A stretch of DNA of 64,000 bases from Anthoceros angustus (Eukaryota; Plantae; Anthocerotophyta), in the NCBI GenBank assembly GCA_010909165.1, contig MU008169.1, forward strand, positions 1,178,001 to 1,242,000, given 5' to 3'. The notes beneath the pieces were generated by a model that worked only from the letters and a program-made list of their open reading frames with translations, searched no databases and was not told the DNA's origin. A program made the position numbers and the translations under genes. How positions within the stretch are numbered: the first letter of the stretch is position 1; each line of letters starts with the position of its first letter. Below are positions 8,776 to 64,000 of the stretch, piece after piece.

Positions 8776-8779
8776 ATAC

Positions 8780-17849: not shown

Positions 17850-17905
17850 ATCCCACTAACCCCTAGGGGTCTTAATGACCCATTCACTCCCCTACCAACT
17901 ATCGC

Positions 17906-20290: not shown

Positions 20291-20294
20291 CCCT

Positions 20295-27948: not shown

Positions 27949-28004
27949 ATCCCACTAACCCCTAGGGGTCTTAATGACCCATTCACTCCCCTACCAACTA
28001 TCGC

Positions 28005-31709: not shown

Positions 31710-33910
31710 GATCTAAGGCATGTCTCCAGGTACATCCACAGTGTGTATCCACCCGTATTATGAGGTGGGTTGAGATATCAAAGAACTTTGGAGGAATTGC
31801 TTTTCAAAGAGCACATCACCCATGACCTCTTCTCACGTGCTTGAATTTCATGGCCGGTATTGTCCATGGCAAATGCATCTGTCTGACCGGCTTCTAGCCT
31901 TGTACAGCTCTATGCACCCCCGAAGGACGATGGGGAAGATGATTTCCAGCATGATGTGCCTGTCATGGCACTTCAAGCTTCCAACTTTGCCCCCATCTAA
32001 TTTCGCTCCTATGTCAGACCCATAGCCTATGGGCCACTTTATGCCTTTAATTCCCTCTATGACCCAACGGAGGTCGTCTTTCGACAAAACGTAAGACGCC
32101 TCGGGGCATTGGCCGTCCTCTCCTACCGGCCACAACCACCTTTTCCCTCCATTGGTTTCCATGTCCATCCTTGATGCGGGACATCTCGCTCTCCGTCAAA
32201 GTGAGCCATATGGCCTCTGCATTGTTCTTTTCCACGTGCATGACATCCTTTGCGCCCACACAAGCGGTGGCGCTAATATGGTAGCACCCCGAGAGGCGAC
32301 ATCGCGAGTTCCAAAATTTCCTCGCTAACGGATCTCGGTGGTGTCGCACCTTCTTTGCGTGCCATATCGGTCCCCACATCGAAAGCGTTGGTGGCTTGGG
32401 TGGGGTCAGATTCGGCGTCCATCGTATCGATCCATGTCTTCCCGCGTCACTATCTCGCTATTAACCACCTCCGGTTCCAACATAAATCTGCTTTTAACTC
32501 GGAGAATCACAGGAATCCAGTCCGACCAACAATCCACACACGCAGGTCCCTTTCACTTGCAATCCGGTCAGTGCCCAAGCCTTGGTAATTAGCAATGGCA
32601 TTACCCATTGCACAACTTGAAATGCCTCCTAGGATCGTTCACCGCTATTGAAAAGTCTTCCATGTCCACCCCTCTCCACAGGTCTTCCAGTTCTTCTACC
32701 AGCGGTGCCATATAAACATCAAAATTTTTTACCATGCTAGGTCCTGGTACAATCAGAGGCATGATGACATGGGCGTCCTTTGTGCTAGCCCAGGGAGGCA
32801 TGTTATGAACGAATAGCAGAACTGGCCATATGGACGTGTTTACAGACCTGTGGCCAAATGGGTTCAAGCCGTCTGTGGATAATGCCAACCTCAAGTTGCG
32901 AGGTTCATCCCCGAACCCTCCAACTGCATCAAGTGCTCTCCAAACTGGGGTGTCCGCCATCATGGACATGTCCCCATTCTCGCTTTGCCTCCCGACATAC
33001 CAAGTCATCATTTGTGCTATTTTCGGCATTCGGAACATGTGTTTCAATCGGCGTCTTTAGAGGAAAATGCTAGAGGACCTTGCGTGGACAGTCTCGGTCA
33101 TCAAACCCTTCCTTGTCTGCATGACCTGCTGTGAGCAATGGACACGATCCAGCGTGCTAAGCCCACAACAAAACACAATCTCTCTCACAAGCATGGATTT
33201 TCACGTATCTTGGCCCAAACATGTGCAACACTGACTTTGCCTCGTACATGTCCTTAGGCAGCTTGTTTGGAAGTGGCAGAATATCCACACTTAAGAGCTT
33301 TAAAAGTGCTGTTACAACGATGTCACTAATGTCATACATGGTTTGCCACGACTGCAACAACAGTATGACGCTTAGCCTGCTTTCTTTCGATTGGACTTCC
33401 TCTTCAATGTGGTATAACGGCGTTTTGCCCGCAGCTCGACAAGCACTGGTCCTGGCCTCCATTCCTACCGCGCCCACTGCAACATCCATAGCTTCCAGCA
33501 ACTCGTCCACGGTGTGCATTTCAGGCATATCATCACCTCCCGGACCCTCGTCCATACTTTCGGTGTCGGAACTACTAAGCAGTGGTAAGATGGCCATGGT
33601 TCCCTGTCGAGACCAGAGCCGTATCCAATTCATCAGGGGTGGGAGGCGCTGCAAGTGCCGCCCTCATCTATGTCCGCTCGTGGCTCGCCGAACTGCAAAA
33701 AAAATACCATTAATGCTAAGATTGGAGTGCACTTGCTGTCCGTCATGCGATAGAACTCCACCGGTACGGGTGCACCGTGGCTTGTGTGAGCAGTGCACTC
33801 TTGAAATGTGTGCCAGAATACGAGCATGCGAGCTCTCCACACTGACGGCAGGGACAATACATGTACACCGCATCTGCATTTCGTGGCATCCTCCCCGGGG
33901 TTGTGATTTT
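31710..33910 (-). pseudogene. CACTA Tnp2 transposase, 5'-complete, truncated in the DUF4218 region
   Basis: N-terminal YCPCRQC, KIHACERDCVL, EPRNLRLALSTDGLNPFG..SIWPV..NMPPW..FDVYMAPLVEELEDLW, DVMHVEKN, LKCHDRH. Confidence 0.93.
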
Positions 33911-34527
33911 GTAGTCACGGCAAACTGCTGACTGGGAGGTACATCCGATTTGACATACCGTCCCCCCATGTATAGTGAATTCATCACCCATAAACCACGG
34001 ATCAAGCGTAGAAGAGAATTTGCTGCGAAACCATGGATGCAAGCACAAAGCGTGTCACACAGTTGGGTGTAAGCATGGTTTGGTGCCACATTTTGGGACC
34101 AAAGAGTCATGAACACTTGGTTACTATGATAGAGTAATAAAATGATCGATTGCTCAAGTTTTAAATATTATATTTTGTCCTATAATTTACCTGTGTATTT
34201 ATATTATTGTTTAACCTATGGAAGTTAAAAGGTAGTTTAAAAGAGTAAATATATCTATATTAGATTATGGTTGACTTCCCTACACCTGATTAATTCATCA
34301 TTTGGAGGGAAACGTGAATCTCCCTTTACTTTAGCGACGCCGTCTTTCCTCTCATTTACTTTCGCGATGCCGTCTTTCCTCTCATCTCTACGCTCAACCG
34401 TGCAGAGGCCATCTCCTTTGTTCCATTTATGCTCTCCTCTCCCTCTGTTTGCACCCACCATCTCCGCGCTGCCCCAAGCTTTCCTGTCGTAGGCTTGTCT
34501 CACGTCTTCCTATGGCAACCGCTTACA

Positions 34528-36018
34528 GTGTCGCCATCATGGACATGTCCTCATTCTCACTTTGCCTCCCGACATACCAAGTTATCATTTGTGCTATTTC
34601 GGCATTGAACATGTGTTTCAATCAGCGTCTTTAGAGGAAAATGCTAGAGGACCTTCGTGAACAGCGTCTCGGTCATCAAACCCTTCCTTGTGCAGCGGCT
34701 GCCACCAGCAATGGACACGATCCGGCGTACTCACCCTGAACAAAACACAATCTCTCTCACAAGCATGGATTTTCATGTATCTTGGCCCAAACATGTGCAA
34801 CATTGACTTTGCCTCGTACATGTCCTTGGCGGCTTGTTTGGGTGGCGAATATCCACACTTAAGAGCTTTAAAAGTCTTTCACGATGTCACTAATGTCATA
34901 CATGGTTTACCGCCGCAACAACGATGACGCTTTCTTTCGATTGGACTTCCTCTTCAATGTGGTATAGCGCGTTTTGCCCATGACTCGACAGCAGTCACGG
35001 CCTCCATTCCTACACGCGCCTTTGCAACATCCATAGCTTCCGACCTTTCGTCCACGGTGCATTTGGGCATATCATCACCTCCGGACCCTCGTCCATACCC
35101 GGTGTCGGAACTACTAGCTTGGTGATGGCCATATTTGGTTCCTGTCGGACCCAAGAGCCGTATCCGAATTCATCAGGGGTGGGAGGCGCACGCAAGCCGC
35201 CCTCATCTATGTCCATGTGGCTCGGAGCGCAAAAAATACCATTAATGCTAAGATTGGAGTGCACTTTGTCAGTCATCGATAGAACTCAGTGCCGCGTGCT
35301 TGTGGCGCGACGTGCACTCTTGAAATGTGCGAATCTGAGCATCGAGCTCTCCTGGCAGCGGGGACAATACATGTACACCGCATCTGCATTTCGTGGCATC
35401 CTCCCCGGGGTTGTGATTTTGTAGTCACGGCAAGCACAACACAGCCTGGGAGGTACATCCGATTTGCGAACGCCACCGTCCCCCCCATGTACTATCGTGA
35501 ATTCATCACCCATAAACACAGACCAAACGTAGAAGCTGGAATTTGCCTGCAGAAACCATGGATGCAAGCACAAACGTGTCACCTGGTTGGGTGTAAGCAT
35601 GGTTTGGTGCCACATTTTGGGACCAAAGAGTCATGAACACTTGGTTACTATGATAGAGTAATAAAATGATCAGTGCTCAAGTTTTAAATATTATATTTTG
35701 TCCTATAATTTACATGTATTTATATTATTGTTTAACCTATGGAAGTTAAAGGTAGTTTAAAAGGGTAAATATATCTATATTAGATTATGGTTGACTTCCC
35801 TACACATTAATTCATCATTTGGAAAGCGTGAATCTCCCTCTACTTTAGCGGCGTCTTTCCTCTCATCTACTTCCGACTGTCTTTCCTCATCTCTCGCTCA
35901 ACCGTGCGAGGCCATCTCCTTTGTTCCATTTATGCTCTCCTCTCCCTCTGTTTACCCACCATCTCGCTCAAGCTTTCACTCGTGCTTGTCTCACGTCTTC
36001 CTATGGCAACCGCTTACA
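34528..36018. repeat. Tandem duplicate of 32951-34527 (5' part of the CACTA element)
   Basis: Co-linear match, both ending cctatggcaaccgcttaca. Confidence 0.85.
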
Positions 36019-36420
36019 ATGTCATACGAAATTGACGTGCTAACCTCTCGGCAACCAAGAGATTCGGGTGTGGCAGCTTGGAAGAAGCTCCGGTGTTGGA
36101 TGGACCACAGAGGTGGCATGATGGTGATAATCATCTTGAAGGTTGGATTGAATGTTAGGGATGACAAGTTGGTCAAGGCCTAAAGGAGGCGCATTGGTGG
36201 GAAGGGCGTTGTGACAAATCACTTTGGCGTGCCTGCAACGCAGAGGCCTCTGACTTGAAGCCACCGACTTGGTGTCAAGGAGGATTGGCAAAGTTTGGGC
36301 GACCTTGTGTTTGCCGTATATGGGAAGCGTGCGGCCACGAACACGGGCCAAAAGATTCCCCGATGTATGGCTTTGGGTTTTCTTGTGGAAGATCACAGGA
36401 AGGGCAATTTGGAAGCCTAT

Positions 36421-38225
36421 AAGCGGTGGTTCTAGGAAGGAAGGCCAACAAGCAAGCAAGCAAGGAAGCAAAAGCTGGAAAGGTGGCACTTGTGGAAGAG
36501 AAGGTAGGGAAGAAGGGGAGAACAGGCAGCTAACCCGTGCAGCCACATGGTGGCTCCGAGCCCTGTGACTAGGTCACAAAGCCAGGAAGCGGCACCAAGC
36601 TGAGGTTGCTAGGGATGTTCGGGAGGCCGGGATGGGAGGCGGAGGTATAGTGATGCAGGTTGGATGATCTTTGAGGTGCCAGCGTGAGAAAGGTCATCAT
36701 CTTGTCCATGACGCCGAGCTTTAAGCCATGGTTAGGTTGCCATGTTTTCGGTCACGGAAGGTAGATGTGTCGTCTTGTTGTGGGTTTGATCTGAGCCAGT
36801 GGGGAAAGGTTGGGCATCTGCGTCACAGGTAGTTTGTTCATGCTTCCATCGGCTTGGTGTGACTTACTTGCTGATGTTTTGTTCTCCTGCTGATTTTAGA
36901 GTTCTCTGACTCGGGTTTTATTGGAATCCGGCGGGACCATGCTAATTTGGTGCGGTGGTTGTGAGTGTTGTGGGTTGTGGGTGATGCGGGCATTCGAGGC
37001 TTCCAATTCGACCCTTGGTACAAGCGAGATGAGTTTCATTTGTTTTTCCATCGGCGTGTCTTGCTTTACGTGGTGTGCACGAATGTTTGGATCCTCGTTA
37101 TAGGCCGTCAGACAAGGCTAAGCGTTGAGCTATTTGGTTGTATCCTGGGTTACATCCCATATGGGCGTGTGGTGGTGGTCTTGACACGACCCTGATTCAC
37201 ATGGTCACAATGTGGATTCATCAATGTGACCGTTTTACGATTTTGCTTGTGTGTGCTTGGGCATATATGGTCACTGACCATCATCTGTGAAGTCGGTGGT
37301 GAGGTGCCCTCCTTACACGATCCGGCATTAAAGCGGTGGTTCTAGGAAGGAAGGCCAACAAGCAAGCAAGCAAGGAAGCAAAAGCTCGGAAAGGTGGCAC
37401 TTGTGGAAGAGAAGGTAGGGAAGAGAGCAGGGGCAGCTAACCCCGTGCAGCCACATGGTGGCTCCTCTGTGTTAGGTCACAGCCGGGAAGCAGCACCAAG
37501 CTGAGGTTGCTAGGGATGTTCGAGGAGGGCGGATGGGAGGCGGAGGTATAGTGATGCCAGTGTGGATGATCTTTGAGGTGCCAAGCGTGGAGAAAGGTCA
37601 TCATCTTGTCCATGACGCGGGCTTTAAGCCATGGTTCGTTGCCATGTTTTCGGTCACGGAAGGTAGATGTGTCGTGTGTGGGTTTGATCGAGGTCGGGTG
37701 GGGAAAGGTTGGGCATCTTTGCGTCTGGTAGTTTGTTCATGCTTCCATCGGCTTGGTGTGACTTACTTGCGATGTTTTGTTCTCTGATTTTAGAGTTCTC
37801 TAGACTCGGGTTTTATTGGAATCAGCGGGACCATGCTAATTTAGTGCGGTGGTTGTGAGTGTTGTGGGTTGTGGGTGATGCGGGCACATTCGAGGCTTCG
37901 ACCCTTGGTGCAAGCGAGATGAGTTTCATTTGTTTTTCCATCGGCGTGTCTTGCTTTACGTGGTGTGCACGAATGTTTGGATCCACTGTTATAGGCCGTC
38001 ACGAGACAAGGCTAAGCGTTGAGCTTTGTTGTGTGGGTTACATCCCATATGGGCAGCGTGTGGTGGTGGTCTTGACACGACCGATTCACATGGTCACAAT
38101 GTGGATTCATCAATGCTTGACCGTTTTCGATTTTGCTTGTGTGTGCTTGGGCATATATGGTCACTGACCATCATCTGAAGTCGGTGAGGTGCCACTCATA
38201 CCCACGATCGCGGCATTAAAGCCGG
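36421..38225. repeat. Two tandem ~900-bp copies
   Basis: Units start aagcggtggttctaggaagg at 36421 and 37331. Microhomology aagc(c)ggtggt at 38219. Confidence 0.9.
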
Positions 38226-38934
38226 TGGTCGGTACTCATAACGTGACCGGTGGTGTTATCCGGGTGGTCACCTCCCATGAGTTCTTGGTCACGTGATCAC
38301 CCGATGTACATCTGGTTTTAATTTCCCTCCTTGCTTCCGGATGCATTGGATTTGCCAAATTGGGAGCGATGAGTGTGCGGAAGGTCAATCTCAAGCGATG
38401 TTAGAGCTTGCAAGGTTATCCGAGATGAAGAAGCCCGTTTCACGGCAAAGGCCTTTGGAGGAGCATTCCAAGTTGACTACGCGAAGCTTCTTTGTGGTGA
38501 GCTTATTGTGCTGGGCGGATGGCGACCAAGCAAAACGACAGGTTGCTCACCTCTTGACTTTCCATTTTCTGCCTTGTTGCCTTCTGCGAGTCTAACCTGG
38601 TAATTTGGTTCGCGAAGGCTGCATTGTGCCACGTTCGAGCCAGTGACATAGCGACCGGAAAGCTGCCCTCATAGCCAATAGGGAAAAAGCAGAAGCTTGA
38701 GCGGTGATCAATCGGCCAGGTGACGATGCTTTCAAGCGCATTGTGGCGACTTTCGGCAACCAGCCCAGGCGCACAATCCGTGTCGTTGTAGGAAGAGTCC
38801 GTTCCCAAGGGAATAGCGAGCTCCGTTTGCGGCGTTTGAGCGATTCTCGTCTTACTTTGCGTCGTTGATTCGCACACATTCATTTCACGTCTAACTACTA
38901 CAACGTTCACCGCGGCCGGTATGGCCAAGCGTTT

Positions 38935-46749: not shown

Positions 46750-48990
46750 CTGTCCATGCACCTCCATTTCAAACTTGCATGTCGAACAATATGAAATTTG
46801 GAGAATCACGGTCCTCCAACAATGTTCTGCGTGATTGGCTTCCTTGAGTTCTGTGAAGGACCAATGCTCGGCATGAGGTTTGATCCTCACAGCGTCCAAG
46901 GAGTGTGGGCATTTCACATCTTGAATGGTTGCTCAAGCGATCAACAAAAAGCATGCGAGCCGCATCAACAATGTTGGGTCGATCTCTGGGTAGAGGCATG
47001 CATTGTCTTGGAACCGGGGAATAGGATCACAACCATGCTTGGCCCTCCTGTTTACCTCATGTTTACCAATTAACCAAAACTTGTACCCCATGCTTGAGGC
47101 ATATGAACTTGCTGCCCGATATGGTTGCGGACAAGTACTCCACAACATCCGCGTGCATTCGCTGCATCGGAGATGACTCCGCTGCCGTGCGATCGCTTCA
47201 AGATCGCTTTTGCACCATCGTGCTCCCCTTCCCATGGCCACACCCAAAGTATGACCAGAGCATGTTACACCCATCTGTGAAGCTTGGGTAGCGAGCAATG
47301 AAATAGCTTGGGCGGCATGCCTTGAAGCGCTTGCGGTCCATCCGACCAACCAATGTTCCGGTGCAAAACCGCATCCCATCCATTGCCAGTGCTTGAGCAA
47401 GCAATGTTGCACAAACAGCGTGTCATGAACAAGATCATCATGATCACTAATGTAAAAATGGTAGTATTTCTCGATGGATGCGGCGGGATCATACATCCAC
47501 AGAGCTATTCCGTGGTAGAACACCAACACGAAGATTGATACGATCATTTTGCGATTACATAGGCGTATCTCATTCTGGACACCAAATGCATATTTGTGGG
47601 AGAAGTCCATGACAGAAACAACTACGTCTTGTGGAAACCATTCCAAGCACTGCCTGAACTCTATCCCTTGCCACCGTTGCACAAAATCATGCAGCACAAA
47701 CTCTTTGAGCTTTACCTTGAAGTGAAACACAAACTCTGAGGGGTGTGTTTCCATGAACACAAGCTTGATACGTTTCTTATCATTCCCATCCGCGTCTCGA
47801 CCAACCACCTGGTACTGGAAACAACATTTAGAACAGCTTGTGGTTGAATGTCTACGGAGGTCTCTGATGGACAGAACAAAAGCTTGGGAATCCCACATCT
47901 GTCACAAGCCCCCTGCAGGCATGCAAGGGCATGCCAGGCTTCATCTGGTCCCTTTGGACACAACAAACGCTCACATAGCTCCCTCGATTGCAGTGGAGGC
48001 AATTACATGGAAGGCTTGGTGTGGCTCAGATAGGGCACATACCATCACGAGGAACAAAGGCAATGGCCACGGGGTGAATCACAGGCCCGAACCACGCAGC
48101 CATTCAAAGCATCCTTTAAAATGCCATCTCGTGATATCTACAACAGAAAGATTACGTTCACCGCAAACTCTTCACGTAAAAACTTCAACTTCTCAAATGT
48201 CCTTTGCCCAACATGGACGTCGTGCTCGACAAAAGCGGAGATAGAACTGCATGCAAACACCACAACGACTTGTGTCGGGGCTTCAGTATCCGGCCGGTGG
48301 CGATGGGTCATAGGAAAGTGACTACCACGTATCCCAGGACATGACGACCCCAAGCCCACTCGGACAGAACGGGCTGGCCACCTACGTGCATGACCATCGG
48401 GACAAGTGCTCCTGTCAGAATATGCACAGTATCCGTGGCCATGTGATTACAACAAGACCATAGAGTCACATAAATTGCCAGGTAGTCACCATATTACATT
48501 TGAGGTGACCATGACACCATGCAGGACCAAGCAAGTGTCCACATGTAGTGGGCACCTGTCATTGCACATGTCCCTGTCATTACACCGTGACCACTGTGTC
48601 TTGGGAGGCTGGATGCCAAGAGGCCACAGAGTCGAGGGTGACCAAAGGTGCGACAAAAATCTTGAATGGCGGTGAAGCACGAGGCGAAGGAACCAAAACT
48701 TGAGATGCATTACGAAATCATGCCCAACATGCACCCCAAAATTGTGGAACAACATCTTTGAACATCGATTCGCACCTTAACACGGCCTTACAAGGGGAAA
48801 GTGATATCGGTGATAGCAAAATCGAGAATAGAATCGGACATATCACAGAGACAAACTGAGACATATCAAGGAAATGAGTGATATGTGTGATGAACGCCTT
48901 TGGAGCAGTTCTGAACCGCTTTGTGTCCTTGGTGTTCGATGATGGTTTGGAGGCGAGTTCCCAAAATTGAACAATTACGTCTTTCACGTA
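46750..48990 (-). pseudogene. Sola2-like DDD transposase, core and C-terminus
   Basis: Cys cluster (LCP..C..G.C..CG), DFSHKYAFGVQNEI, SD..HDTLFVQHC, WSDG..FK, WSYFGCGHGKG.HDG. Confidence 0.75.
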
Positions 48991-49117
48991 AAGTCGCGGC
49001 CTCGTCTGGGGCCTCGGCCGCGCCAGTAGTTTTCGGGGTAGTGCGGTAAATTTTTAGAGAGAAATTGACCTTTTGGTCATTATTTTACCCAGAGTAAAAT
49101 TCATTCTGATATAGTAG

Positions 49118-49188
49118 AAAATCATCTACCATCAAGGTACAAAAACAAGAACCATACAAGTGGGGTAAAATCATCTACCATCAAGGTA
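49118..49188. repeat. 22-bp subterminal direct repeat aaaatcatctaccatcaaggta, two copies
   Basis: Exact copies at 49118 and 49167. Confidence 0.85.
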
Positions 49189-49539
49189 GAAAATAGAGCA
49201 CTAGAGTAGAAAACATGACGACCAAGTGAATACCATGGGTCTAGAAGCTCATTCTAGAAATCCCACCAAAATCGCTAATCGACAAAAACATTTACATTAA
49301 ATAATATTCATGCGGATCCGGGATATACAAAAACCAACAAAGAAACCTTTTCTTTGCGAGTTTCTGTATATCCGAATGGCATGAAATACAAATTCAACTA
49401 ATGAAGAGTAAATACCGGCATAGATTGAACTGCTAGATTGAACTCTACTTCAACAACAATGGAACCTACAAACAAAACGAAAGACACAAACCGTGATTAG
49501 GTGATACTAGAAAACACTGAAATAATCATAGCAAATACT

Positions 49540-52500
49540 TAGGAAATGATACTCACCTTATTTAGGAAATTATGTACAATTACATTGAAAAGCGTAATTT
49601 TCACGACCACTTGGCTTGATTGGCGGTTATGCGGCATCATTCTTGGCAACCAATTGATGAAGCTGAGGACTTGGACGAAATTGTCCGGCTTCCTGCAAGG
49701 TGACAACCTAATAAAATACAACCATTGATTTTCAATGTACTGCTGATTAATAAAGAGCATAAGAAAACTTACCAATCCTGACGGATTTTCGCAGATAGCA
49801 GTGCAAATATCTCGAGACACATTCTTCTGCTCCTGTTCTCTTTTCCACTGCAGTCTTCGAACCTCTTGCTGCTCTATCTGCTGCTGCTTCAGTTTCTCTT
49901 GATGCTTAATGTGCTCTTGTCTCCTCTCCACATTTCTCCGCCTCTGGATCTCAAGGGCTTTCTCTCTTTGCTTAGAGACTCGTAATTCAAGCGCTTTCGC
50001 CTGTCTCTCTATAAGAGCCTCCAAATCCTTTTGCCTGAAACTCCAATTCTGTTTACATATCATACTCCAATTCCGTACTCGCGCAATCTCGAAGCCGCTC
50101 AAAGCCACTTCCATTTCCATTTGCGATCCAGCAATACAATATCGAGGTGCTACCACCACATTTACATCTGGTTAACCGGATGGTGATCACACTCACTATG
50201 CACAATGCCCTCCAACGGAGGGACCACGCATCCACTTCCCTCGGTATCAATGTTGAAATGAGGGGCGGTAAAACTTCCACTAGTCGCAGGATTCACAACC
50301 GCCAAGATAAACATAATCGAAACTCCAAAAGAAGTGAAAACAAACAAGCAGACAAAGAATCAACCTTGTCAACATATGGAATTTCACTAGAACACCCATT
50401 GTTGGTCTGTTATCCATCGAATGCCTTGGCCACGCTTCGGAGGTATGTTTGCAACCAAAACATACGATCTCCCACACCCATAACAACAGAGACCGATGAT
50501 TAAAACAGATCCAACATGGCGGCGCAACCAAGGAACGACAATACCAACTCGAACTTGAGACACGTGGACCAAATGGTGCGGAAAACTCGATTCGGTCTTG
50601 ACATTGTTCAAAGGTGCCTTTCATGATGAACAACAGGAGTTGCTACGAGACCTAACACACAAAAACAAGTCGACAGATTAGTCAAAACAAGTCCCTACAA
50701 ACTTGCAACAAATCTCAAACACTTACATTGTTAACTGTTGCACTCGCAAGTGCGATCTTGGTGACTAGAAAATACAATTTCGAGTCACATTGAGGGTTGG
50801 CGGAAGAACACCCTTAAATCATCCCGCATCCGATTCGTTCTTGGTTCAAAAGCTCGATAGGATCGCCGTTCACCGAACAAGGACTCTTCTGCGGTACTGT
50901 TTTGCTTGACGACGGTCATATCGCAAACCATATCGAACATCGAGGAAGGAACATACAAAGGACTCAAATGTCACAAGCTTTCAAAACATATTACCTTGAG
51001 AATCCGGCATCTTTTATGGCGTCACACTTCTCCCAAAGATCGAAGGCACCGAGCCATCGTCAAGCGTGTAATCATTGTTACACGGCTCTTATTGGTGTAA
51101 TAGCCAGGCGTTGCTTGACCATGGTCTTCATGAACCTTGACAACATTCCTTTTGAAACACGGAGTTTTGCATACCAAGCCTAGCCAAAAACAAGCTTAGT
51201 AAATACAAACCACAAAACTTAAGCCCAATAACAACAAACTTACATTTGATCTTGGGTTATCAATTGTTGAATTGAACAAAACCCCGAATTGATGATTTTG
51301 TCGTTTGCGAGACCACTTGGGAGAGTGTTCAATAATGACTCTAAAAGTTTCGATAACATCACCTCGTAAATCTTGACCTTTTTGACGGAAATGCTCACTC
51401 TGGTAATTCTTCATGTCCACTTTATAATTTTTGAAAGCCGTTCTTGATACGCAAATAAAAGCGAGCTAGACATCAAAACAACCAAAACATACGACGTCAA
51501 AGATACAATGAACAAAACAACCAAAACATCTTGAACAAAAGGTCCTTTTGAATCTGAGAACGAGAAGTCCACGATGAGCGGTTATGTAACTCTTCACCAC
51601 CTCGAACTCCAAACTGGTCATGCAAAAATATGCACACCGCAAACAATAGAGGCCTCCGTGTTTAAAACCATAAATGAACAATCAAAGTGCACCCCTAAAC
51701 CAACAATATTACCTTTTTGAGCCCCGCCCAAATGAGCATTGATGATCTCGTGTGAAAGAATCCGCTCATCATCAAAATCAACTTCACCTCTTTTCGACAT
51801 GACACAATTCCAGATCCTTGCGATTTTCATGGGCGCAACAACAGGACCCATGGAAAATTCCATGGAACATGTTGATCACCGGAACATCAGAACCAAGCCG
51901 GCTTTGGTTCAAGATGCACTTCCTTGTTAAAATTCGGTTAAAACCACGAAAGAAAGACATCAACCTGCACAAGAGAATCAGAAATCAGTCATGTGAATGA
52001 AAGTCAGAACTATCAAAATCAACAAGTCAAAAAACATCACTACTTACGTTTCTGGAGAAAATCTCCTGTTGTCCTTCAGATTCCGAACTTGATGGAAAAA
52101 GGGTATCAGAATAAGATTTAGATCCTTGTAAGGATATCCTCAACAGATCCCATCCCACCCCACTCACTTTCATAAAGGCCACGAGGCGACTTGACACGAT
52201 TATTACGCGTTTGGACCTATCCTCCCCACCACTCAACGCATCATTCACGCTCCCTCGGGACTATTGGGTCAAATCCACACTCTCGAAAATTGCTTCATCA
52301 TCAATTTCCTCCATACCCATGGCAAAGTCATCTTGGGATCATCACACTTTAGCCTCTCAAACATATCAAGCACTTCTTGATCGGGGATGACTCGGTCGGG
52401 AACCACAAGCATGGAAGCGCCCAGCAAAGCATTCATTCAGCACACAAATCTCTAGACTCAGGGCTTTGGCGGCACTCACAACCATGGGGATCGTCGTTAT

Positions 52501-52847
52501 CAAGAAATCATTCTCCCCACAACTGGACCCCTCTCTCGAGACCGGGACATAGTTAGTAATCTCGCAAGAGGACCTTCAACCAAAGCCACAGTCAGTGTCC
52601 ACCCTTCTCCTCTTCTCGAACAAACTCTGCCGTCGGCGTCCTTCTTGGATGAAGCGCCTTGGCGGTTTGGGCAAGTCTTTTGGGAACTAAGTAAGTTCCT
52701 TGTGCACCAAGACACCATCAACTTTACCATCATCCTGCAGCGGATGAGTTGCGATATCTAACCATGGTTGACCACACTGCAGTATAGCCATAACTTGACC
52801 AGGATCCTTGTTTTCTTCCGGCCAGTGGGTTTTCTTTTAGGAGCCAT
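49540..52847 (-). CDS. Intron-containing Crypton/DUF3504-like tyrosine recombinase (frameshifts present)
   Basis: Spliced reconstruction: MAPKRK..DLNLILIPFFHQVRNLKDNRRFSPET|LMSFFRGFNRIL..MKIAR..DERILSH..K|GL..FGVRGGEELHN..|YQERLSK/NYKVD..NPRSN|AWYAKLRVSKGMLSRFMKTM..YTNKS-RVTMITRL..VT(G)HK..FSR|YDR, then a coiled coil. Confidence 0.85.
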
Positions 52848-54681
52848 CTGCAAAGCGAGAGAATTAGAGTGGTCAAGGAACTTGACAACACAAACATCCG
52901 CAGAAGTTGACAAAAGACAAAATAAAAGCACTTACATGGTGTTGAACTTCCAGATAGGAACTGTCAAGGGTCTAACAATTGATTATAAAACAATCGACGA
53001 GGATAGGGATGGGGGATATGGCGACACATTCATTGAATATACACATTGTTAAATATTGAAATCCCTCCACTTTTGGTTAGTGAGAAGATAACTCCTTTCA
53101 AACAACACCCACATACTTCCGTAATAGAAGACTTTGTCGGCAAGTTAGATTTAAGAGGAAAAAACAAACAAAATAAGGTTATCCAGACACAAGCAGTATG
53201 CAGACAACATAACTCGAGATTCAATCATGACTTCAAATTCGAGCGAAATGGTTATCACGATTCACGCAGACCAATCGAATGTTGGCGGTCAACCCTTCAC
53301 ACGATGAACAATAAAGCCTACACACACAGGTAAAGAATTAGATTATTCACAGAGAACTCACAGCTACGTTAAAAGACAACGAGGTAATTATCAATGAGGA
53401 GAAATCATCAAGTTTAAAATCGTTCACATACCATATCGAGGTTACGAACAAAACGCCTTATCGTCAAAGGCGGTTATGCGCATCAAAGCAAGGACCTTAG
53501 AATAAGAATGAGGCACGTGACTGATGCGACAATATACAAAACACGAATTCAATAACTGGCGTTGTTGAATTACGTAACAAACAATAGATAGCATTTTTAA
53601 CGGAACATTCGTAAAGCAACAACAAAGGCGTTTCGACGTCAAACAAGGTCCCAAATGTGTCCGCCATACTCGTAAAACCTTTGGCATCAAAGCGGAGAGA
53701 GATCACACAAGCAACGACGCTCTCAGAAAGAGAGAAAAACAAGATTTTGCGATGACACAACAAACAACGATGGAACCATGACATGAGACAAATGTAAATC
53801 GCGACTAAAGCATTAACCAACCTTTCTTACGTCCAACAACCTCTTGCGTTTACTCCTGCGTTTCAAAAGGAATAGAAGACAATTAAGAACAAAATCGCTC
53901 AACATTATAAACAATGAAAGCTCAAGAGAAGATAGCATTCATTTTCCAACAGCAACATATGTAAACGCAGAGAAACCGATTGACACAAAAGACATTTGAT
54001 GACTTACCAAAGTGGTCCCGATCTATAACCGCCACTTCAACGAAAAGTTGATCGCATCAAAACACAACGGAGAGGGTTACAACACACGAGCAAAGCGAAA
54101 GTCGAACAAAGACTTGAAGCAGTTATGCGCTTTAACGACTGGGACCACGGCGACAACGGCGACAAATAAAGACACTTCCACCAAACAAACAATCAAGCAA
54201 TAAAGATTTTGCGAGAGAAAGAACACAAGCATCACATGCAGCATGAACAAAAGTAAGCCTAGCCAACCACAAAAGCTCAAAGCAGGCGAACACACGGCTG
54301 TCTTTGAGAAAGTAACACCATCGACACCAAAGACAAGCAAAGACCAGCGATGAACTACGACGAGAAATCAAATAGAACAACACTAGGGACATACAAATCG
54401 AGATAACATCTTAGCGGGTCTTTCCTAAGAAAGATAAACAATCAGCACAAGAACAACATAAACAACGACAAATACACAAAACATCCTCGATGTATATAGA
54501 AACTTGAATACACTACCACCATAGAGGTAGACAAAACACACAACGGCAATGAAGCAGACCAAAGCACGAAACTACTCCAGAAGCGGCACAAAACACAAAA
54601 GCAACGGGCCAAGCGGAAAAAAAAAACAACGTGAACGCAGATGGCCGACTTCAAATAGCGGCAAAAGGCCTTAAAGCGAAA

Positions 54682-55125
54682 CCTTGGCCTTGAAAAGAAC
54701 CTTGGCCTTGACTAAGCAAGCACATGGACCTTAGAGGCAAAGACACCTTGGCCTTCAACATGGGAACCCCTTGAAAAGAACCTTCAAAAGAGCAAGAACA
54801 CCTTGGCCTCAAACAACTTTACGACACCTTGGCCTTGAGCGAAGGCCTTAACATTGGAAAGGGCACGAAAAAGAAACCTTGGCCCCAAAACTTAACGACC
54901 TTCGCCTAGCAAACCTAGAACACCTTGGCCTTGAATGAGCTACAGCAGACCTTGGCCCGGAGCAACACACGTTGGCACAAACTAGAACTAGACCCTTCCC
55001 AAACAGAAGGAGGACCTTGGCCTAAACTAAACAGAGCAAAACACCTAAGCCTTGGCGCGGGAGACACCTCGGACTTGAAAAGACAGAATAAAAAGAACTC
55101 GCTATGAGGAAGCCATTTATATAGG
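54682..55125 (-). promoter_or_regulatory. Probable YR promoter: TATA (cctatataaat, ~55115-55125) and nine CCTTGGCC copies
   Basis: Exact motif at 54682, 54700, 54746, 54801, 54827, 54877, 54923, 54950 and 55015. Confidence 0.6.
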
Positions 55126-55559
55126 CCAGCAAACCCTAAATATTCCTCTGGCCTCTACTGGTGGTTTGAATTTACCGAACCTAACTTTCCGAGCCCAATT
55201 CCAAACCGTAGGTTGCCATTAGGCCGCCTCAACCAAACCTAGATTCATTTTCCAAACCTAGCCTAACGCCAAACCTAATCTCCGAACCCCGTCAGGCGTA
55301 ACACGAACCTCTGCGGCCAACCACCGCTCACGACCCCAGAACCCTAACTATGCCAGCACACCTAGGGTTGGTGTCCGCCAACACGCCGCCGCACTGCGGT
55401 CGGCGGTCCTCGATCCGCTCGCCCTGACCATTCGCTCACAATTTGGGAGTCCTCGGAGAAGGTCCGCAATCGGCTCTTCCTTTCATCTGTCGCCCTACAT
55501 GCGTCCACATCTTTGTTATCGGCTGTTCCCCATAGGTGGGTCGCTAATTGCACTCTCAA

Positions 55560-56220
55560 CGCTGAAACCGATCCGTCCAGCCCACACGGTCACTGCCATC
55601 GCCTCTCCACGCCAACCGCGACAGAAGTCTCATTGGCGTCCTCTGTCGGCGTCAAACACTTTCTTCTTTGTTTTCGTTGCAGACCAATTGCCACCCATCA
55701 CGCCATCTTCCGCTCTGGTAACATCGTCCTTTCGCCTTGCATGATTTAATTTCGAAGTCTCGAGACATAGACAAAACCTCGGGCGTCCTCCGTGGGTACG
55801 TTGTCAAGCACGCCGTCGTCTCTTCTCTTTGTTTTTTTTGCAGCCGATCGAGCAGCCGTCGCGAGCTTTCTTCGATCTTTCACAGGTTGTTCCATGAGTT
55901 GCTCCACCTCGCATGATTTAATTTGAAGTCTCGAGACATAGCCGCAGACCCTCGGCGCCTCCGTGGGTACGTTGTCAAGCATACTTACGTCATGTCTTTT
56001 CTTTTGTTTTTCGCAGCCCAATTCCAACGCGTCATCGCAGCTTTGCTTCGCCTCTGATATCTTATCGAGTGTGAGTTTGCGCCTTCAACGCCGCTTATCC
56101 GATTTGTGTTGTATATCGAGACATCGCACAAAACCGTCAGTCCGCATGACGTGCCAAGCGTAGTTGCCAACCTTACTTCCATTTGCTTGTTTTCTTTTCA
56201 AAGTCCACTCTGAGCATGTA
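55560..56220 (-). repeat. 3-4 degenerate ~170-bp tandem repeats, potentially coding (LDNVPTE..YVSRL)
   Basis: gcatgatttaattt..gaagtctcgagacatag..ctccgtgggtacgttgtcaagca at ~55739 and ~55911, with weaker units on each side. Confidence 0.7.
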
Positions 56221-56755
56221 AGCTTTGGTGTCGATATTTTTCGACGGCTTCGTTTGCGATCGCGATCTTTGCATGCTTTCCTAGATAGAAACCACTGGCC
56301 TTAGTGTGGTGTCCGCAGGGTCAACCATTCTCCGTAAGTCACCCTCCATCACGCATGCGTTAAAGAAGCATGCTTGTCAAATGTGTCGCATGGTAGTTCA
56401 CGCAGTTCAGGCATCGTAAGATGCGATTGCGTGCGTCGGTGAAACCACTGCATGTTGACGGTCAGCATGCGATGCATCAGCGCTGTAGATGCTGGCGACT
56501 CGCGCGCTCGTTTCACATGCGCGACCGCTTGTGGCGGCATGCAAACGCTAGGCGCCGTTTGCCGATCAACGGATTTGCCGCGCGGATGTTATGGACTTTG
56601 TAAACTCACGCCTCTCCTCTTTGATTGCGGAAGGTCACGCAAGAAGGCGCCACTCTAGTGTAAGTACGTCCTTCCAAATTCTCACTTTTCTTTTTCGATG
56701 GGATCCTTGTTCGATCGATTTGGCGGTATCTCTGATTGGTGGCTTTTTAATCGGG

Positions 56756-58453
56756 ATGGAATCGAGAACGGAAGCAATAACGATTTTCAAATCCAAGAAG
56801 GTACTTGATTATCGTTTCTTACTTTGCTTTTACTTTTACTTTTACTTTTACTAATATCTATTGTGTCAACCCCTGCAGAGAACTACATGACGCCACCCGT
56901 GAGCGCACTCGACAAATTACTTCCCACCCATGGGGATCCGAGGATATGCCTAACGAGTTTGAACCACCACTGGAGATAAGAAAGATCGTAGAAAAAGGTA
57001 TTCAGAAAAAATGATTGCTGGTATGTTTGTCCTGTATGTTCTTGTTGGTCAGAGTCTAACAAAACCCGTGGGTTGCAGTCCTCTGTGAGCACACAATGTT
57101 CTCTGTCATGGACAAACAAGACCTTAAGCATCTTTGTGAGATGCCTGCCCAGTTGAATAAGATAAAGAAGGTAAGCACTTTTCTTTAATTCGTAAACTTC
57201 AATCTTTTTATGCTCAAATCCAAAATCTTAACCTTAAATTTCTCTGCGGGATATCAAAAGAACCTTGAACAACTCAATTGAGCTGAAGCGTACACTTGTG
57301 GAAAGGTTTAATGGACACGATTTTCAATGCAAACAATGTTGGAGGGATATCAAAGTTCAATCCAGCATCGAGGTAATCAAATCCCTAATACATTCATACT
57401 TTCTTTGCTTCTTAACATTGACCTTATAACTTGGCATTACAGAATGCTGGAAAACAAGCTGTTGCCGCAAAAAACATAAAGGACAAAGTCGATAAGATTG
57501 ACAACAACATTGACAACGCAGCCATCTCCAATCAGGTATACAAAAAGTATTAGGTATATAATGTGCATTAATATGATTTGGTTTAAGAAATTAATGATTT
57601 TGGTTTTTGATCAGGCAAAAAAGAGAAAAATTGATGACTTCGAGGAGGATGGACCAACTTACGGGCCGTCACTTGAGTTCACCGAGTTTGGAAAGTGGAT
57701 GAGCAATTTTCAATATCCACCACTTTTTCAAGACTTTAAAGATAAGTATTCTGCACTTTGGGAGCATAGTCTAAAAGAGCAAGTACAGCCCATCTTGAAT
57801 GAAGATGGGTCCAACCCAACATTCGAGAGACAGACAAATCCAAGCAAGTAAGCGATAACTTCTCTTTTCTCTATTATTTTCATTACATATAATTCTATGT
57901 AATGTAATTATGCATTGAATGCGAGAGATAGGGGCAGCAATTGAAAATAAGGAGTTGAAAAAGCAGACTTGTTGTCTCTCATGGAAGAACCGAGACAACT
58001 AAAACATTCAAAAGGTACATCGTTTGAAAGGTAATATCCGCTTGCATTCCAAAAAATTCTAATGTTTATGTTTCTTGAACATACGATCACATTTCCGGTG
58101 TGGGGAATCTTCACAGACGTGTTTAACGCTTGTCGAAAAGGTATATGCAAAGAAAGATCTTCTCCGAATTGAAATGGAGGTAAATGACTAATTACTTTTA
58201 CTTTTTGTTTGTAGTTATCGGAGAATCAAAGCGAGTTGTTTTCACTCTTTGAGGTGAGTACTAAAGTTAAAAATAGATAAGTTTTATATATGAATTCGAC
58301 AATGGTTTAAATTGCGAAATATTCTCGCTTGGATGAAATATTGAAATGATAATACATTTATCTGGACCATACAATCAGCAGCTCAAAAGTACTATTCAAG
58401 AGACGGACGACGAACCATATTACACTCCATCTACTCCAATAGAATATGTGTGA
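56756..58453 (+). CDS. Multi-exon cargo gene of unknown function, with NLS-like KKRK
   Basis: ATG at 56756, about nine GT donors (e.g. 56801, 56998, 57170, 57373, 57536, 57847, 58015, 58141, 58254), exon AKKRKIDDFEEDGP..NPSK, stop after TPIEYV. Confidence 0.6.
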
Positions 58454-58767
58454 TTTAAAAATATTTTGATTAGAGCCTAATTACGGCGGTGATGATAATC
58501 CTTTTATTGTGTAAAAGGATTGAAAAAGCAATAATCTGATGAGTGAAGGGTAAATTCTTGTAAGAGAGAGAAATGACATATAAGCCGGGTGGTATAGGCA
58601 CCGGTCTACAAGTTCACGGACCTCGGCTCCGCAGTGCCGAAGTTAGGCGGCGTCGGCCCCAGACTCGGCTCCTTCGCTAGGGGCGGGCCGCGTCGGGCGC
58701 CGGCCTAGACGGTCTCGGCCTCACGGCCTCGGCCGTTCTCGGCCGTCGGCCTCGCCGTCCGTTCTAA

Positions 58768-59494
58768 TACATATCTACCTGTGTCACTCCGTGTCTTCCT
58801 ACCTGCACCACACCAGTGAGATATTTCACCATGCACATCTCCTTGCTGAGAACCCAAGGCTCGATACAGCTGCCTCCTACTGACTCCTATTCGGCGAGAC
58901 AACGAGGAAACAAGGTGGCTCCCTTTGATATCTTTAGACAGAATCATGTTGAAGAGCGTGTTCCGTGCCCGCAAATGGTCTCCAAATTGCACGTCCTTCA
59001 AACTTGAGCATGCAACCTTCAAGTTCTGCATGATCATTGCTGCCACCTCGCTATCCTTCGCAGTCTTTGCAGTCTCAACCCGATACTCTTTCAACAGTGG
59101 CAGCCGGCCAAAGAGCGCCAAGATGTCTTGTTTGCTCAGTGTATCTAGAAGTGAGATGCAAGAAATGTTGACCAATTTCCCGAGCCACCCTCATTTCACA
59201 TGTAAAGCATTCCACGCTCCTGTCGATTCGCTCAGGCCCGCCACTCTCCACTTCTTGACTCGTTGTGTTGAGGTCCGTGAGGCAACATCCCCAAGCCTTG
59301 CTTGATCCTCGCCTCCAACCGCATCCCCCTCCTCCCCCCCCCCACGCTTTCTTGAGATAGCCCCTTATCACACACACGCATCTGCCCTTCCGGACTTGCT
59401 CGCTCATACCGCGTGCACTGCCGACCTCGCGACGCTTGCTCTCGGCCATGCTCGCCTCGGCTTCAGTGAGCGTGCCATACCTCTTGAGGGCCAA
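58768..59494 (-). pseudogene. Sola2-like transposase N-terminus (HTH-like)
   Basis: LSRRIGVSRRQLYRAL..W...RKTRSDT continues into VKDVIVQFW at 48987. Confidence 0.7.
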
Positions 59495-59610
59495 AATGCG
59501 TGTGCCCGCTAGAGAGTCACCAAGCCCGATCTTGAGACCTTAAGCATCTTTGCGAGATGCTTGAGTGGCGGCATGCCGCGACACGCGTTGAGTGGCGGCA
59601 TGCCGCAACA

Positions 59611-62538
59611 CGCGGATGTTATGGACTTTGTAAACTCACGCCCCTCTCCTCTTTCGTGAATTCGAGCTGACCAAAGGTCACGCAAGAAGGCGCCACTCTA
59701 GTGTAATCGTCCTTCAATTCTCAACTTGTTTTCTTGGATCGTCTTGTTCATCGATTTGGCGGTATCTCATGATTGTCTTGATGGCTTTTGAATCGGGATG
59801 GAATCGAGAACGGAAGCAATAACGATTTTCAAATCCAAGAAGGTACTTGATTGTAATATTTATACGCTTTACTTTGCTTTTACTTTTACTAATATCTATT
59901 GTGTCAACCCGCAGACAAGAAATGCCACCCGTGAGCGCACTCGACAAATTACTTCCCACCCATGGGGATCCGAGGATATGGCTAACGAGTTTGAACCACC
60001 ACCGCTGGAGATAAGAAAGATAGTAGAAAAAGGTATTCGGAAAAATGATTGCGTTAGTCTGTATGTTCTCGTTGGTCGAGTCTAACAAAACCCGTGGGTG
60101 TCCTCTGCGAGCACACAATGTTCTCTGTCATGGACAAACAAGACCTTAAGCATCTTTGCGAGATGCACCTTGATTGAATAAGATAAAGAAGGTAAGCACT
60201 TTTCTTTAATTCATAAACTTGATCTAATTATGCTCAAATCCAAAATCTTAACCCTAAATTTATCTGCGGGATATCAAAAGAACCTTGAACAACTCAATTG
60301 GGTGAAGCGTACACTTGTGGAAAGGTTTAATGGACACGATTTTCAATGCAAACAATGTTGGAGGGATATCAAAGTTCAATCCAGCAAGATCGAGGTAATC
60401 TAATACATTCATACCTTCTTTGCTTCTTCACATTGACCTTCTTATAACTTGGCATTCTGAGAATCTTTGGAAAACAAGTGTCATAAAACATAAAGGACAA
60501 AGTCGATAAGATTGACAACAACATTGACAACGCAGCCATCTCCAATCGTATACAAAAGTATTAGGTATATAATGTGCATTAATATGATTTTGGTTTAAGA
60601 AAGTAATGATTTTGGTTTTGATCGGGCAAAAAGAGAAAAATTGATGACTTCGAGGAGGATGGACCAACTTACGGGCCGTCACTTGAGTTCACCGAGTTTG
60701 GAAAGTGGATGAGCAATTTTCAATATCCACCACTTTTCAAGACTTTAAAAATAAGTATTGCAATTTGGGAGCATAGTCTAAAAGAGCAAGTACATTTATC
60801 TTGAATGAAGATGGGTCCAACCCAACATTCGAGCAAGACAAATCCAAGCAAGTAAGCGATAACTTCTCTTTTCTCTATTATTTTCATTACATATAATTCT
60901 ATGTAATGTAATTATGCATTGAATGCGAGATAGGGGCAGCAATTGAAAATAAGGAGTTGAAAAGCAGACTTGTTGTCTCTCATGGAAGAACCGAGACAAC
61001 TAAAACATTCAAAAGGTACATCGTTTGAAAGGTAATATCGCTTGCATTCCAAAAAAATTCTAATGTTTATGTTTCTTGAACATACGATCACATTTCCGGT
61101 GTGGGGAATCTTCACAGACGTGTTTAACGCTTGTCGAAAAGGTATATGCAAAGAAAGATCTTCTCCGAATTGAAATGGAGGTAAATGACTAATTACTTTT
61201 ACTTTTTGTTTGTAGTTATCGGAGAATCAAAGCGAGTTGTTTTCACTCTTTGAGGTGAGTACTAAAGTTAAAAATAGATAAGTTTTATATATGAATTCGA
61301 CAATGGTTTAAATTGCGAAATATTCTCGCTTGGATGAAATATTGAAATGATAATACATTTATCTGGACCATACAATCAGCAGCTCAAAAGTACTATTCAA
61401 GAGACGGACGACGAACCATATTACACTCCATCTACTCCAATAGAATATGTGTGATTTAACCAAAAATATTTTGATTAGAGCCTAATTACGGCATGTGATG
61501 ATAATCCTTTTATTGTGTAAAAGGATTGAAAAGCAATGATACGATGGTGAAGGGTAAATTCTTGTAAGAGAGAAATGACATATAAGCCGGGTGGTATAGG
61601 CTACATTAGACTGCCCGCCTCGCCGCAGTTGAGTTACCCCGCCCGACTCGGCCGCTCCTTACGCTTAGGAACGGACGTGGCGCGCACGGCCTAGACGGTC
61701 TCGGCCTCACGGCCTCGACCGTTCTCCGTGACGCCCTCCTTCGCTCCCCGGTTCCTTCGCCTTTGTCACTCCGTGTCTTCCTACGCACCACACCGAGATA
61801 TTTCACCATGCACATCTCCTTCTTGAGAACCCAAGGCTCGATACAGCTGCCTCCTACCGACTCCTATTTGGCGAGACAACGAGGAAACAAGGTGGCTCCT
61901 TTGATATCTTTAGACAGAATCATGTTGAAGAGCGTGTTCCGTGCCCGCAAATGGTCTCCAAATTGCACGTCCTTCAAACTTGAGCATGCAACCTTCAAGT
62001 TCTGCATGATCATTGCTGCCACCTCGCTATCCTTCGCAGTCTTTGCAGTCTCAGCCCGATACTCTTTCAACAGTGGCAGCCGGCCAAAGAGCGCCAAGAT
62101 GTCTTGTTTGCTCGCAGAGGTGTATCTAGAAGTGAGATGCAAGAAATGTTGACCAATTTCCCGAGCCACCCTCTGTTTCACGCGAAGTGAGCATTCCACG
62201 CTCCCTGTCGATTCGCTCAAGGCCCGCTGCACTGCTCTCCACTTCTTGACTCGTTGTGTTGAGGTCCGTGAGGTGGTCAACATCCCCAAGCCTTGCTTGA
62301 TCCTCGCCTGCCTCCAACCGCATCCCCCTCGCTCCCGCCCCCACGCTTTCTTGAGATAGCCCACTTCTATCACACGCATCTGTCCTTCCAGACTTGCTCG
62401 CCTGCTCATGCATGCTGACCTCTGGCGGCGCTTGCTCTCGGCCCATGCTCGCCTCGGCTTCAGTGAACGTGCCATACCTCTTGAGGGCCAAAATGCGTGT
62501 CGCCGCTAGAGAGTCACCAAGCCCGATCTTGACGACCT
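59611..62538. repeat. Tandem ~2.95-kb duplicate of 56581-59538 (cargo gene, YR right end, transposase N-terminus)
   Basis: Co-linear and near-identical, both starting cgcggatgttatggac. Confidence 0.92.
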
Positions 62539-64000
62539 TTCACTGTGATGTCTTCACATGGCTGCAGCAACCATGCGCGCCCGTGTGAGACCAAACCCTA
62601 AACATCTAGCTTGGACCCAGTTCTACATGGTTCAGATTTCACCCACCCCAGCGCCTCTGAACAATCGCAACAAATGGCTGTTCCGCTGAGCCCGCGTGCA
62701 TCCATTGGCGGATTGTTGCGTGTAGATGCCTACCTCCACTGAGCCAACTTGTTTGTGGCTTCGAATGAAGCACCCACTGGGCGTCATCAGCATCACCTAC
62801 AGGCCATGCTCGCACACGGCTTCCCGCTGTGTTTGAAGTACTTGATGAAACCGAGATGCTTGATGTCAGCCCATAAAATTAACAAGTGCACTGGCGGTGC
62901 GTCCGTGGTGGGGCGCCAGTAAAGGTACGGACCATTTTCCCTCCTTCGCTCCCCCGGTTCCTTCGCTCCCCCGGTTCGTAAAAATAACATGGCACAATGG
63001 ACAAGTGTCGAGGACATTGCCCGTCTTAGCATCCCCGGACCAAGGCATTTTTTTTCAAGGTCTTTTTTTCCCTAATCTAATTTCATATTTTAACCTCAGA
63101 TACATACATAAGAATACTATCATCTATAAAAATACCAGACCGTTTGGAAACGAAATCAATTATATAAAATTATATTCAATATAAGAGGACAAAAGAAGGA
63201 TGTTTCAACCGTTACGCACCAAAGTGAGCACCAAACCATGCATCTGCCCGGTTATGGAGATCCCGTCCTCCGTGATGACACCAGCTTGAGGATGAGTCGT
63301 CGGTTAATCGGAACCAAAGCAGCTACGCCGAGACGATGCACGCATCAGACAACACCATCTGGGGCTGTTACAAGAACCTCGCGCATCGGGACATCACCAA
63401 CACAATTCGAGCGACCCAAAATCTACCACCGTCTTCCAATCCCAACTCATTGTGCGACACGGAGCGCGCTTGGTGGGTACGAGACTGGATGCACGCAACC
63501 AAAGAGTGTTGCAATTTTGAAGTGGTACATAAAGTGAAAGACCAAGCATTGTGTTAGGATGGTGGGAGAAGGTAGAGAAAAAATTGACCAACTGAACACC
63601 AAGCCATCAAAACGTATTGCAAGTTAGAAGTGTTACATAAAATTGCAACAACAACTGTAACAAGGGCAGGTGGCAAATTATTAACAATGCTTGTGAGAGA
63701 GGGGGTGTACCCATAAGGGTGAGGTGGGAAGAGAGAGTGGCAGGTTCGTGTTAAGATGGCTGCACCAAACGGGGTCAGAACTGACAAACTTAATACCAAG
63801 CCTCCAAAGCATGTTGCAATGTGGAAGTGTAACAAAAAATTGCAACATCGACTGTAACATAGGCTGGCTTTTCTAGTAGGGTGCAGAGGCTGTGGAGGAT
63901 AGCGCCTTGAAATGCACCATGGCGAATAGGGCGCCCCCCAATGGATCCCCTTGCCTTGTACCTGTCGCCGAGTGGAGAACCGAAACGCCTTTGGTAGCTG

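Follow-up and report, generated by a model that had tools for sequence, protein, structure and literature searches.

The DNA analyzed in this work is a 64-kb window of the Anthoceros angustus genome (64,000 nt of contig MU008169.1, assembly GCA_010909165.1, forward-strand positions 1,178,001 to 1,242,000; all coordinates below count from its first letter), and within it a stretch of 9,777 nt (48991-58767; 3 × 3,259 nt) is a real, discrete insertion, without target duplication, on a minus-strand transposase-like gene. We interpret this stretch, with a probability of about 0.65, as an old and dead copy of a DNA transposon of roughly 10 kb that worked like a Crypton. Cryptons have been characterized in fungi, stramenopiles, and animals. 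The first-pass annotation of this DNA had reported a transposase-like gene cut by a discrete insertion of about 9.8 kb, and both the long minus-strand open reading frames (ORFs) in the flanks and their fusion upon exact excision bore this out.

The bases at the two edges were read directly. At the left edge, the dinucleotide TA (48989-48990) is followed by aagtcgcgg, and at the right edge ccgttctaa is followed by TA (58768-58769); these are the TA positions and bases that the first-pass annotation had given. Upstream of the insertion in the direction of the host gene, the flank at 58768-59190 (minus strand) shows no stop codon over the 141 codons that lead to the junction, and the downstream flank at 48721-48990 (minus strand), which opens with YVKDVIVQFWELASKPSSNTKD, is likewise open for the 90 codons that follow the junction. 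The flanks were joined in a script under three models, namely, excision of exactly 48991-58767, excision of one TA in addition, and treatment of TAA as a 3-nt repeat. Exact excision fused the 141- and 90-codon ORFs into a single 231-codon ORF reading RKTRSDTGRYVYVKDVIVQFWELASK, with zero stop codons in the 90 codons past the junction, while stops appeared in the fused frame when one TA was also excised and likewise when TAA was treated as a 3-nt repeat, and the two pieces share a frame only when no base of either is removed. Since only exact excision keeps the frame, the host gained or lost no base and both TAs belong to the host; since both are needed for the host frame, the TA is neither a target-site duplication nor a shared crossover core. 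Thus, the earlier view of the TA flanks as a duplication has to be given up, and so does the proposed join reading D-M-Y-V-K-D across a shared TA, which lies out of the frame of the upstream ORF and yields stops once one TA is taken away.

By the frame test, the edges of the element are placed to within about 1-3 nt. The corresponding target (48986-48995 joined to 58763-58773) reads cacgta|tacat, and the insertion point coincides with the center of the 6-bp palindrome GTATAC (GTA|TAC). The base composition also differs between flanks and element, the guanine-plus-cytosine (GC) content being about 50% in the flanks versus 33 to 46% inside the element.

Both flanks look like successive parts of one transposase-like gene that was cut in two. 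The upstream piece, which includes a helix-turn-helix (HTH)-like segment, closes with ...SRRIGVSRRQLYRA...GRKTRSDTGRYV and the tail RKTRSDTGRYV; it showed a weak match to HTH_8 in Pfam (E value, 0.051), and no match was returned for it by a homologous-protein search or by a metagenome scan. A second copy of this flank is located at about 61770-62170. The interrupted gene also comprises a 321-codon ORF (46936-47898, minus strand), in which the DDE-like motifs VMDFSHKY and ISDHDD were recognized by eye and whose closest Atlas clusters comprise hypothetical proteins of eukaryotes, some of them annotated as DUF7869 (score, 0.93 to 0.94). This ORF had no Pfam match, and the Sola2-like label that the gene had been given is a putative one. 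Sola2 elements form a group with a DDD transposase, terminal inverted repeats (TIRs), and a 4-bp target duplication.

The ends of the element were analyzed by self-BLAST and an inverted-repeat scan, and these revealed no TIRs, no long terminal repeats (LTRs), and no long terminal direct repeats; the best inverted pair near the ends is 23 nt long, 78% complementary, and subterminal. The two ends do share a composition. The left terminus (48991-49030, plus strand) has 72% GC and 0.15 CpG per nt, and the right terminus (58600-58767, plus strand) has 71% GC and 0.16 CpG per nt, compared with 43% GC and 0.044 CpG per nt for the interior. CGGCCTCG and GGCCTCGGCCG motifs occur at both termini in the same orientation, and the right terminus additionally contains a 14-nt tandem at 58709-58753. 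Joined in a circle, the two ends would merge into a GC-rich region of some 200 nt, resembling an attachment site that integration has split.

Inside the element, the minus strand carries a decayed, intron-split gene resembling those of tyrosine recombinases (50788-52847), with a putative start, MAPKRKPTGRKK, at 52847, an inferred stop at 50788, and homology to other proteins spanning 51661-51025. Introns with GT/AG boundaries are visible (donor at 52047 with acceptor at about 51967, and donor at about 51245 with acceptor at about 51180). The exons were compared with other sequences one at a time, and none of them singly had a Pfam match. In a phmmer search against 1.84 billion representatives, the open piece 51199-51465 yielded a single match (E value, 4.7 × 10−4), to P0001, a protein of 190 amino acids (aa) from a metagenome contig. 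With P0001 as the query, P0002 (137 aa) was retrieved at an E value of 7 × 10−18. The latter is encoded on four identical Logan contigs, L001 to L004, that read like an intronless pseudogene; these contigs (about 1.1 kb; runs SRR33208273, -76, -77, and -80) are interrupted by stops and contain FNIRGGAELYG, SKNYKV, and NKSGP. For the comparison, the L001 pseudogene was translated through, with X at the stops. In the reverse direction, P0001 matched positions 51480-51253 of the window with an E value of 9 × 10−11 (tblastn).

A family hidden Markov model (HMM) was then built from two sequences, and the window was scanned as 2,470 six-frame pieces. The top four of these were collinear (51500-51661, 51199-51465, 51081-51179, and 51025-51195), and the exon with the lysine box scored an E value of 3 × 10−11 within the window. 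Along the minus strand, the motifs appear in the order FGVRGGEELHN (about 51600), FKNYKVDM (about 51430), GYYTNKSRVTMITRL (about 51090), and GERRSYRAF (about 50870). The first of these, the putative first-arginine box (51500-51661, minus strand), is weak alone (E value, 2 to 3); it aligns with FNIRGGAELYG of L001 and AIRAGIELWN of P0001. The lysine-box exon (51247-51465, minus strand), FKNYKVDM...EHFR...DVIETF...IDNP, is the best conserved. The exon assigned to the second catalytic box (51025-51195, minus strand) is spread over two frames, with WYAKLRVSKGMLSRFMKTM in 51081-51179 and then GYYTNKSRVTMITRL, and the relatives read GNKSGRASMVTRI (P0001) and TNKSGPMTCVTRM (P0002) at this box. The last exon (50788-50970, minus strand) holds GERRSYRAFEP, a candidate nucleophile region, and then a stop; it was picked out by eye and without statistical support, and it is positionally equivalent to VHKSKGLYM of P0002. 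The order of an arginine box, a lysine box, a K/H-x-x-R box, and a candidate Tyr is kept.

Three kinds of lesions were found in this gene. An in-frame stop (51466-51468) lies inside the region that aligns to P0001, a frameshift separates 51081-51179 from 51025-51195, and the catalytic box is one codon short relative to NKSGR of the relatives, reading NKS-RV in the window. Because of the in-frame stop, the frameshifts, and the codon loss in the catalytic box, the window copy is dead.

The only Pfam match of P0001, P0002, and L001 was in each case DUF3504 (PF12012, a domain derived from CryptonA recombinases), at collinear profile positions and with E values of 0.096 to 0.11, and none of the three reached the gathering threshold of that family. 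An Atlas comparison of an 85-aa piece was uninformative for the identity of the recombinase, and a metagenome scan with the family alignment found no match. From the conserved order of the boxes and the DUF3504 lead, the protein family, of which few members are on record, is likely a tyrosine recombinase distantly related to DUF3504/CryptonA. The Crypton-like recombinase of the first-pass annotation is therefore retained in part: a decayed, intron-split gene with a weak DUF3504/CryptonA lead is present, and a significant match to recombinases is not.

A second multi-exon gene (56591-58450, plus strand; 3′ end approximate) starts at the ATG at 56591 and points away from the recombinase gene. 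Its small exons (among them 56591-56659, about 56879-56998, and about 57078-57170, all on the plus strand) have canonical GT/AG sites, as does an open piece of 123 codons (57480-57848, plus strand), which is flanked by such sites. Pieces of this gene had no Pfam match, and its peptide TRERTRQITSHPWGSEDMPNEFEPP is retained in the tandem copy described below. Downstream of the recombinase gene, there is a 210-codon open frame (49542-50171, minus strand) with a coiled-coil-like middle rich in Glu, Lys, and Gln, which may represent either a third gene or an extension at the C terminus; it had no Pfam match, and a search of proteins similar to it in length retrieved no relative. Exact look-ups of two ORFs of the window gave no match either.

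Between the divergent genes, nine exact copies of the motif ACCTTGGCC form a same-strand array (54681-55022, plus strand) with an irregular spacing of 18 to 65 nt. The motif matched 10 times in the 64-kb window versus 0.83 expected, and 9 of the 10 matches fall within this 342-nt array. The copies do not lie in a single reading frame, and the array is possibly one for protein binding. To its right, two direct repeats of roughly 110 nt each (55735-56018, plus strand), 171 nt apart, are 83% identical.

The rest of the interior was surveyed as about 50 stop-to-stop pieces of 33 to 210 aa. In Pfam searches, these contained no RT (reverse transcriptase), RNase H, methyltransferase, helicase, or DDE domain, and no other Pfam family, DUF3435, GCR1_C, and peptidases included; no Rfam family and no tRNA were found in the element interior. 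These results agree with the first-pass annotation in that TIRs, LTRs, RT, and helicase are missing, and the spliced recombinase-like gene, the multi-exon gene on the opposite strand, and the repeat region that it listed are all present. Its description of the element as carrying cargo, by comparison with Starships, did not hold up, as the 9.8-kb interior contains no Pfam family; nothing in it would qualify as cargo, and the two or three genes present belong to the element itself.

The right junction lies within a 3-kb tandem duplication, the first copy of which is at 56581-59541 and the second at 59611-62539 (plus strand), with 89.9% identity over 3,034 alignment columns. The duplicated unit consists of the rightmost 2.2 kb of the element (gene 2 and the right end) plus 0.77 kb of host flank; since it includes both the element end and the host flank, the duplication is later than the insertion. 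Identity between the copies is uneven, being 100% over 300 nt (58085-58384 versus 61086-61385), 76 to 97% in neighboring stretches, and 54 to 62% across 58580-58778, i.e., the GC-rich terminal 190 nt. This pattern suggests a recent gene-conversion tract together with fast decay of CpG sites. The second copy of the junction (about 61725-61765) has been rewritten and differs from the first over about 40 nt. A patch within it (61734-61760) matches 62939-62966 at 27 of 28 positions and looks like the product of templated repair or conversion. The source-like sequence at 62939-62977, 1.2 kb to the right of the patch, is a 17-nt unit present twice. A third right end at 62939-62985 was considered and rejected, its alignment score being equal to that of shuffled sequence. 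Because the second junction is rewritten, the right end of the element is defined by the first junction alone. Thus, the earlier statement that both ends are resolvable holds only in part, given the 3-kb tandem duplication over the right junction and a second junction that differs over about 40 nt.

The 69-nt spacer between the tandem copies holds a 27-nt unit twice (59561-59614), and this unit resembles the sequence immediately to the left of 56581, which places the duplication breakpoint within a short repeat. The remaining window is likewise rich in large tandem or segmental duplications of 85 to 90% identity (16779-23016 with 26853-33355, 32950-36023, 36421-38229, and 1-1172 with 7597-8786), and such duplication-swollen repeats seem typical of the Anthoceros angustus genome.

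We propose the following course of events. The element carries an intron-rich recombinase-like gene on the minus strand, the divergent gene 2 on the plus strand, the motif array between them, and ends rich in GC and CpG. By analogy with Cryptons, it would have left its earlier site as a circle, with the two GC-rich ends joined into one attachment region, and strand exchange mediated by the recombinase would then have placed it in the transposase coding sequence of another transposon, at the center of GTA|TAC. In this process, no host base was duplicated or deleted, as the reading frame shows. The recombinase gene subsequently decayed through a stop codon, frameshifts, and codon loss, and the 3-kb segment across the right junction was duplicated in tandem. 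Excision as a circle and integration mediated by the recombinase are the steps of Goodwin's Crypton model (summarized in PMC3212892 and PMC13465315), and animal CryptonA and CryptonI elements also have neither terminal repeats nor a target duplication (PMC3212892).

Several results weigh against the Crypton-like interpretation. With regard to the insertion, a join in frame would arise by chance alone in 1 of 3 cases, so the ends of the element are fixed only if the insertion was a single event; the 64-kb window holds just one copy of the element plus the partial tandem duplicate, and a search with the element ends found no further end-like sequence in the window; and, at the second junction, the patch replaces 27 nt at the end of the element and 12 nt at the start of the flank. 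With regard to the protein, the DUF3504 scores of P0001, P0002, and L001 are 13.0, 13.1, and 13.2 bits, respectively, versus a cut-off of 29.7. A PDB profile search gave noise only, hhalign against Cre returned a probability of 0.2%, and no match was obtained in PHROGs or NCBIfam. The AlphaFold model of P0001 was unusable (predicted local distance difference test [pLDDT] value, 35). Finally, the relatives carry a Lys at the position of the box-II His of recombinases, and the catalytic Tyr is a candidate.

Among the other explanations, it is conceivable, if unlikely, that the 9.8 kb is a patchwork of several events, such as nested insertions and segmental duplications, either in an intron or in a damaged copy of the host transposon; the recombinase pseudogene would then be one component among others, and the frame of the join would be preserved by coincidence. 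The abundance of large tandem and segmental duplications in the window, one of them across the right junction, would fit such a history, as would the one-in-three odds of the join and the single copy in the window; yet the flanks can be read through as one continuous ORF that lacks nothing, and the two ends are alike in their motifs and in their unusual GC- and CpG-rich composition. We consider it very improbable that the stretch is a nonautonomous or foreign element moved by a TA-duplicating DDE transposase, with the recombinase-like gene as a passenger. A TA does stand on either side of the element, and a fusion of a Crypton with a mariner that has TA duplications, MarCry-1_FO, is known (PMC3212892), but TIRs and, in Pfam, a DDE domain inside the element are both lacking, and the host frame is broken when one TA is removed.

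The same low standing is given to a remnant of a DIRS- or Ngaro-type tyrosine-recombinase retrotransposon that has lost its RT. Tyrosine recombinases are encoded by elements of these types, which are present in green algae and in some plants, and the window copy is heavily decayed; however, RT, RNase H, and methyltransferase occur in none of the roughly 50 pieces, split or inverted terminal repeats are absent, and spliceosomal introns, normally missing from retroelements, are numerous in the gene. Moreover, its sole Pfam lead is DUF3504, which is matched by the recombinases of Cryptons but not by those of DIRS and Ngaro elements (PMC3212892). Hardly credible is a Starship-like recombinase element with cargo, since the presence of more than one gene and a size larger than that of most Cryptons are countered by the lack, in Pfam, of a DUF3435 match and of any recognizable cargo domain, and by a length of 9.8 kb versus tens to hundreds of kilobases for Starships.

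We retain the Crypton-like transposon as our reading of 48991-58767. The odds appear to us evenly balanced for a broader proposal, namely, that bryophyte-grade plants harbor an undescribed Crypton-like lineage with elements of about 10 kb, in which an intron-rich recombinase distant from DUF3504, with Lys for the box-II His, would be accompanied by a conserved divergent gene, and in which a GC-rich attachment region would be split by integration without target duplication, here at the center of a short palindrome. In a literature search, no paper paired Crypton with Anthoceros, and the sole paper with both Crypton and Marchantia was on a red-alga genome. The literature searched contains no account of such elements from hornworts or liverworts, in keeping with the first-pass annotation, which had known of no described plant equivalent. 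If true, a Crypton-like lineage in plants would broaden the range over which DNA transposition driven by recombinases is known. For an element without terminal repeats, there are few ways to determine the ends, and insertion into a reading frame is among them. The window copy offers such a determination, with no base gained or lost, GTA|TAC as the target, and an adjacent TA shown not to be a duplication; the copy is of restricted value in that it is dead and the recombinase was assigned on weak similarity.

Compared with known systems, the element shares with Starships, the fungal elements with a DUF3435 captain, the combination of DNA mobilized by a recombinase and more than one gene; it differs from them in having no DUF3435 and no cargo, in being ten to a hundred times smaller, and in residing in another host kingdom. 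Bacterial integrative elements of the Tn916 and CTnDOT types offer a parallel in that a tyrosine recombinase integrates them without target duplication and non-identical crossover sequences are tolerated. These elements are prokaryotic and conjugative, and the likeness may serve as a working analogy, not as homology. CryptonF and CryptonS elements of fungi, oomycetes, and diatoms are alike in their proposed circle-mediated transposition by a recombinase, and some of them carry a second gene (for a C48 peptidase). In contrast to the window element, for which a shared TA or TAA core is ruled out by the frame test, they have terminal direct repeats of 4 to 6 bp that are regarded as recombination substrates, and no GCR1_C or peptidase domain was found in the element studied here.

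The comparison with CryptonA/DUF3504 elements, known from animals and, as Glomhoppers, from Glomeromycota, also has two sides. The window element stands apart in its land-plant-type host, in a DUF3504 match far below the threshold, in the Lys that its relatives carry for the box-II His, and in its length of about 10 kb, its second multi-exon gene in divergent orientation, and the motif array between the genes. It is alike in that its main gene is tyrosine-recombinase-like with DUF3504 as the sole Pfam lead and in that RT, TIRs, and LTRs are lacking; the absence of terminal repeats and of a target duplication is shared with CryptonA and CryptonI of animals (PMC3212892), and intron-containing copies together with many decayed ones are found among Glomhoppers (PMC13465315). 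Among the known groups, CryptonA is the one closest to the window element.

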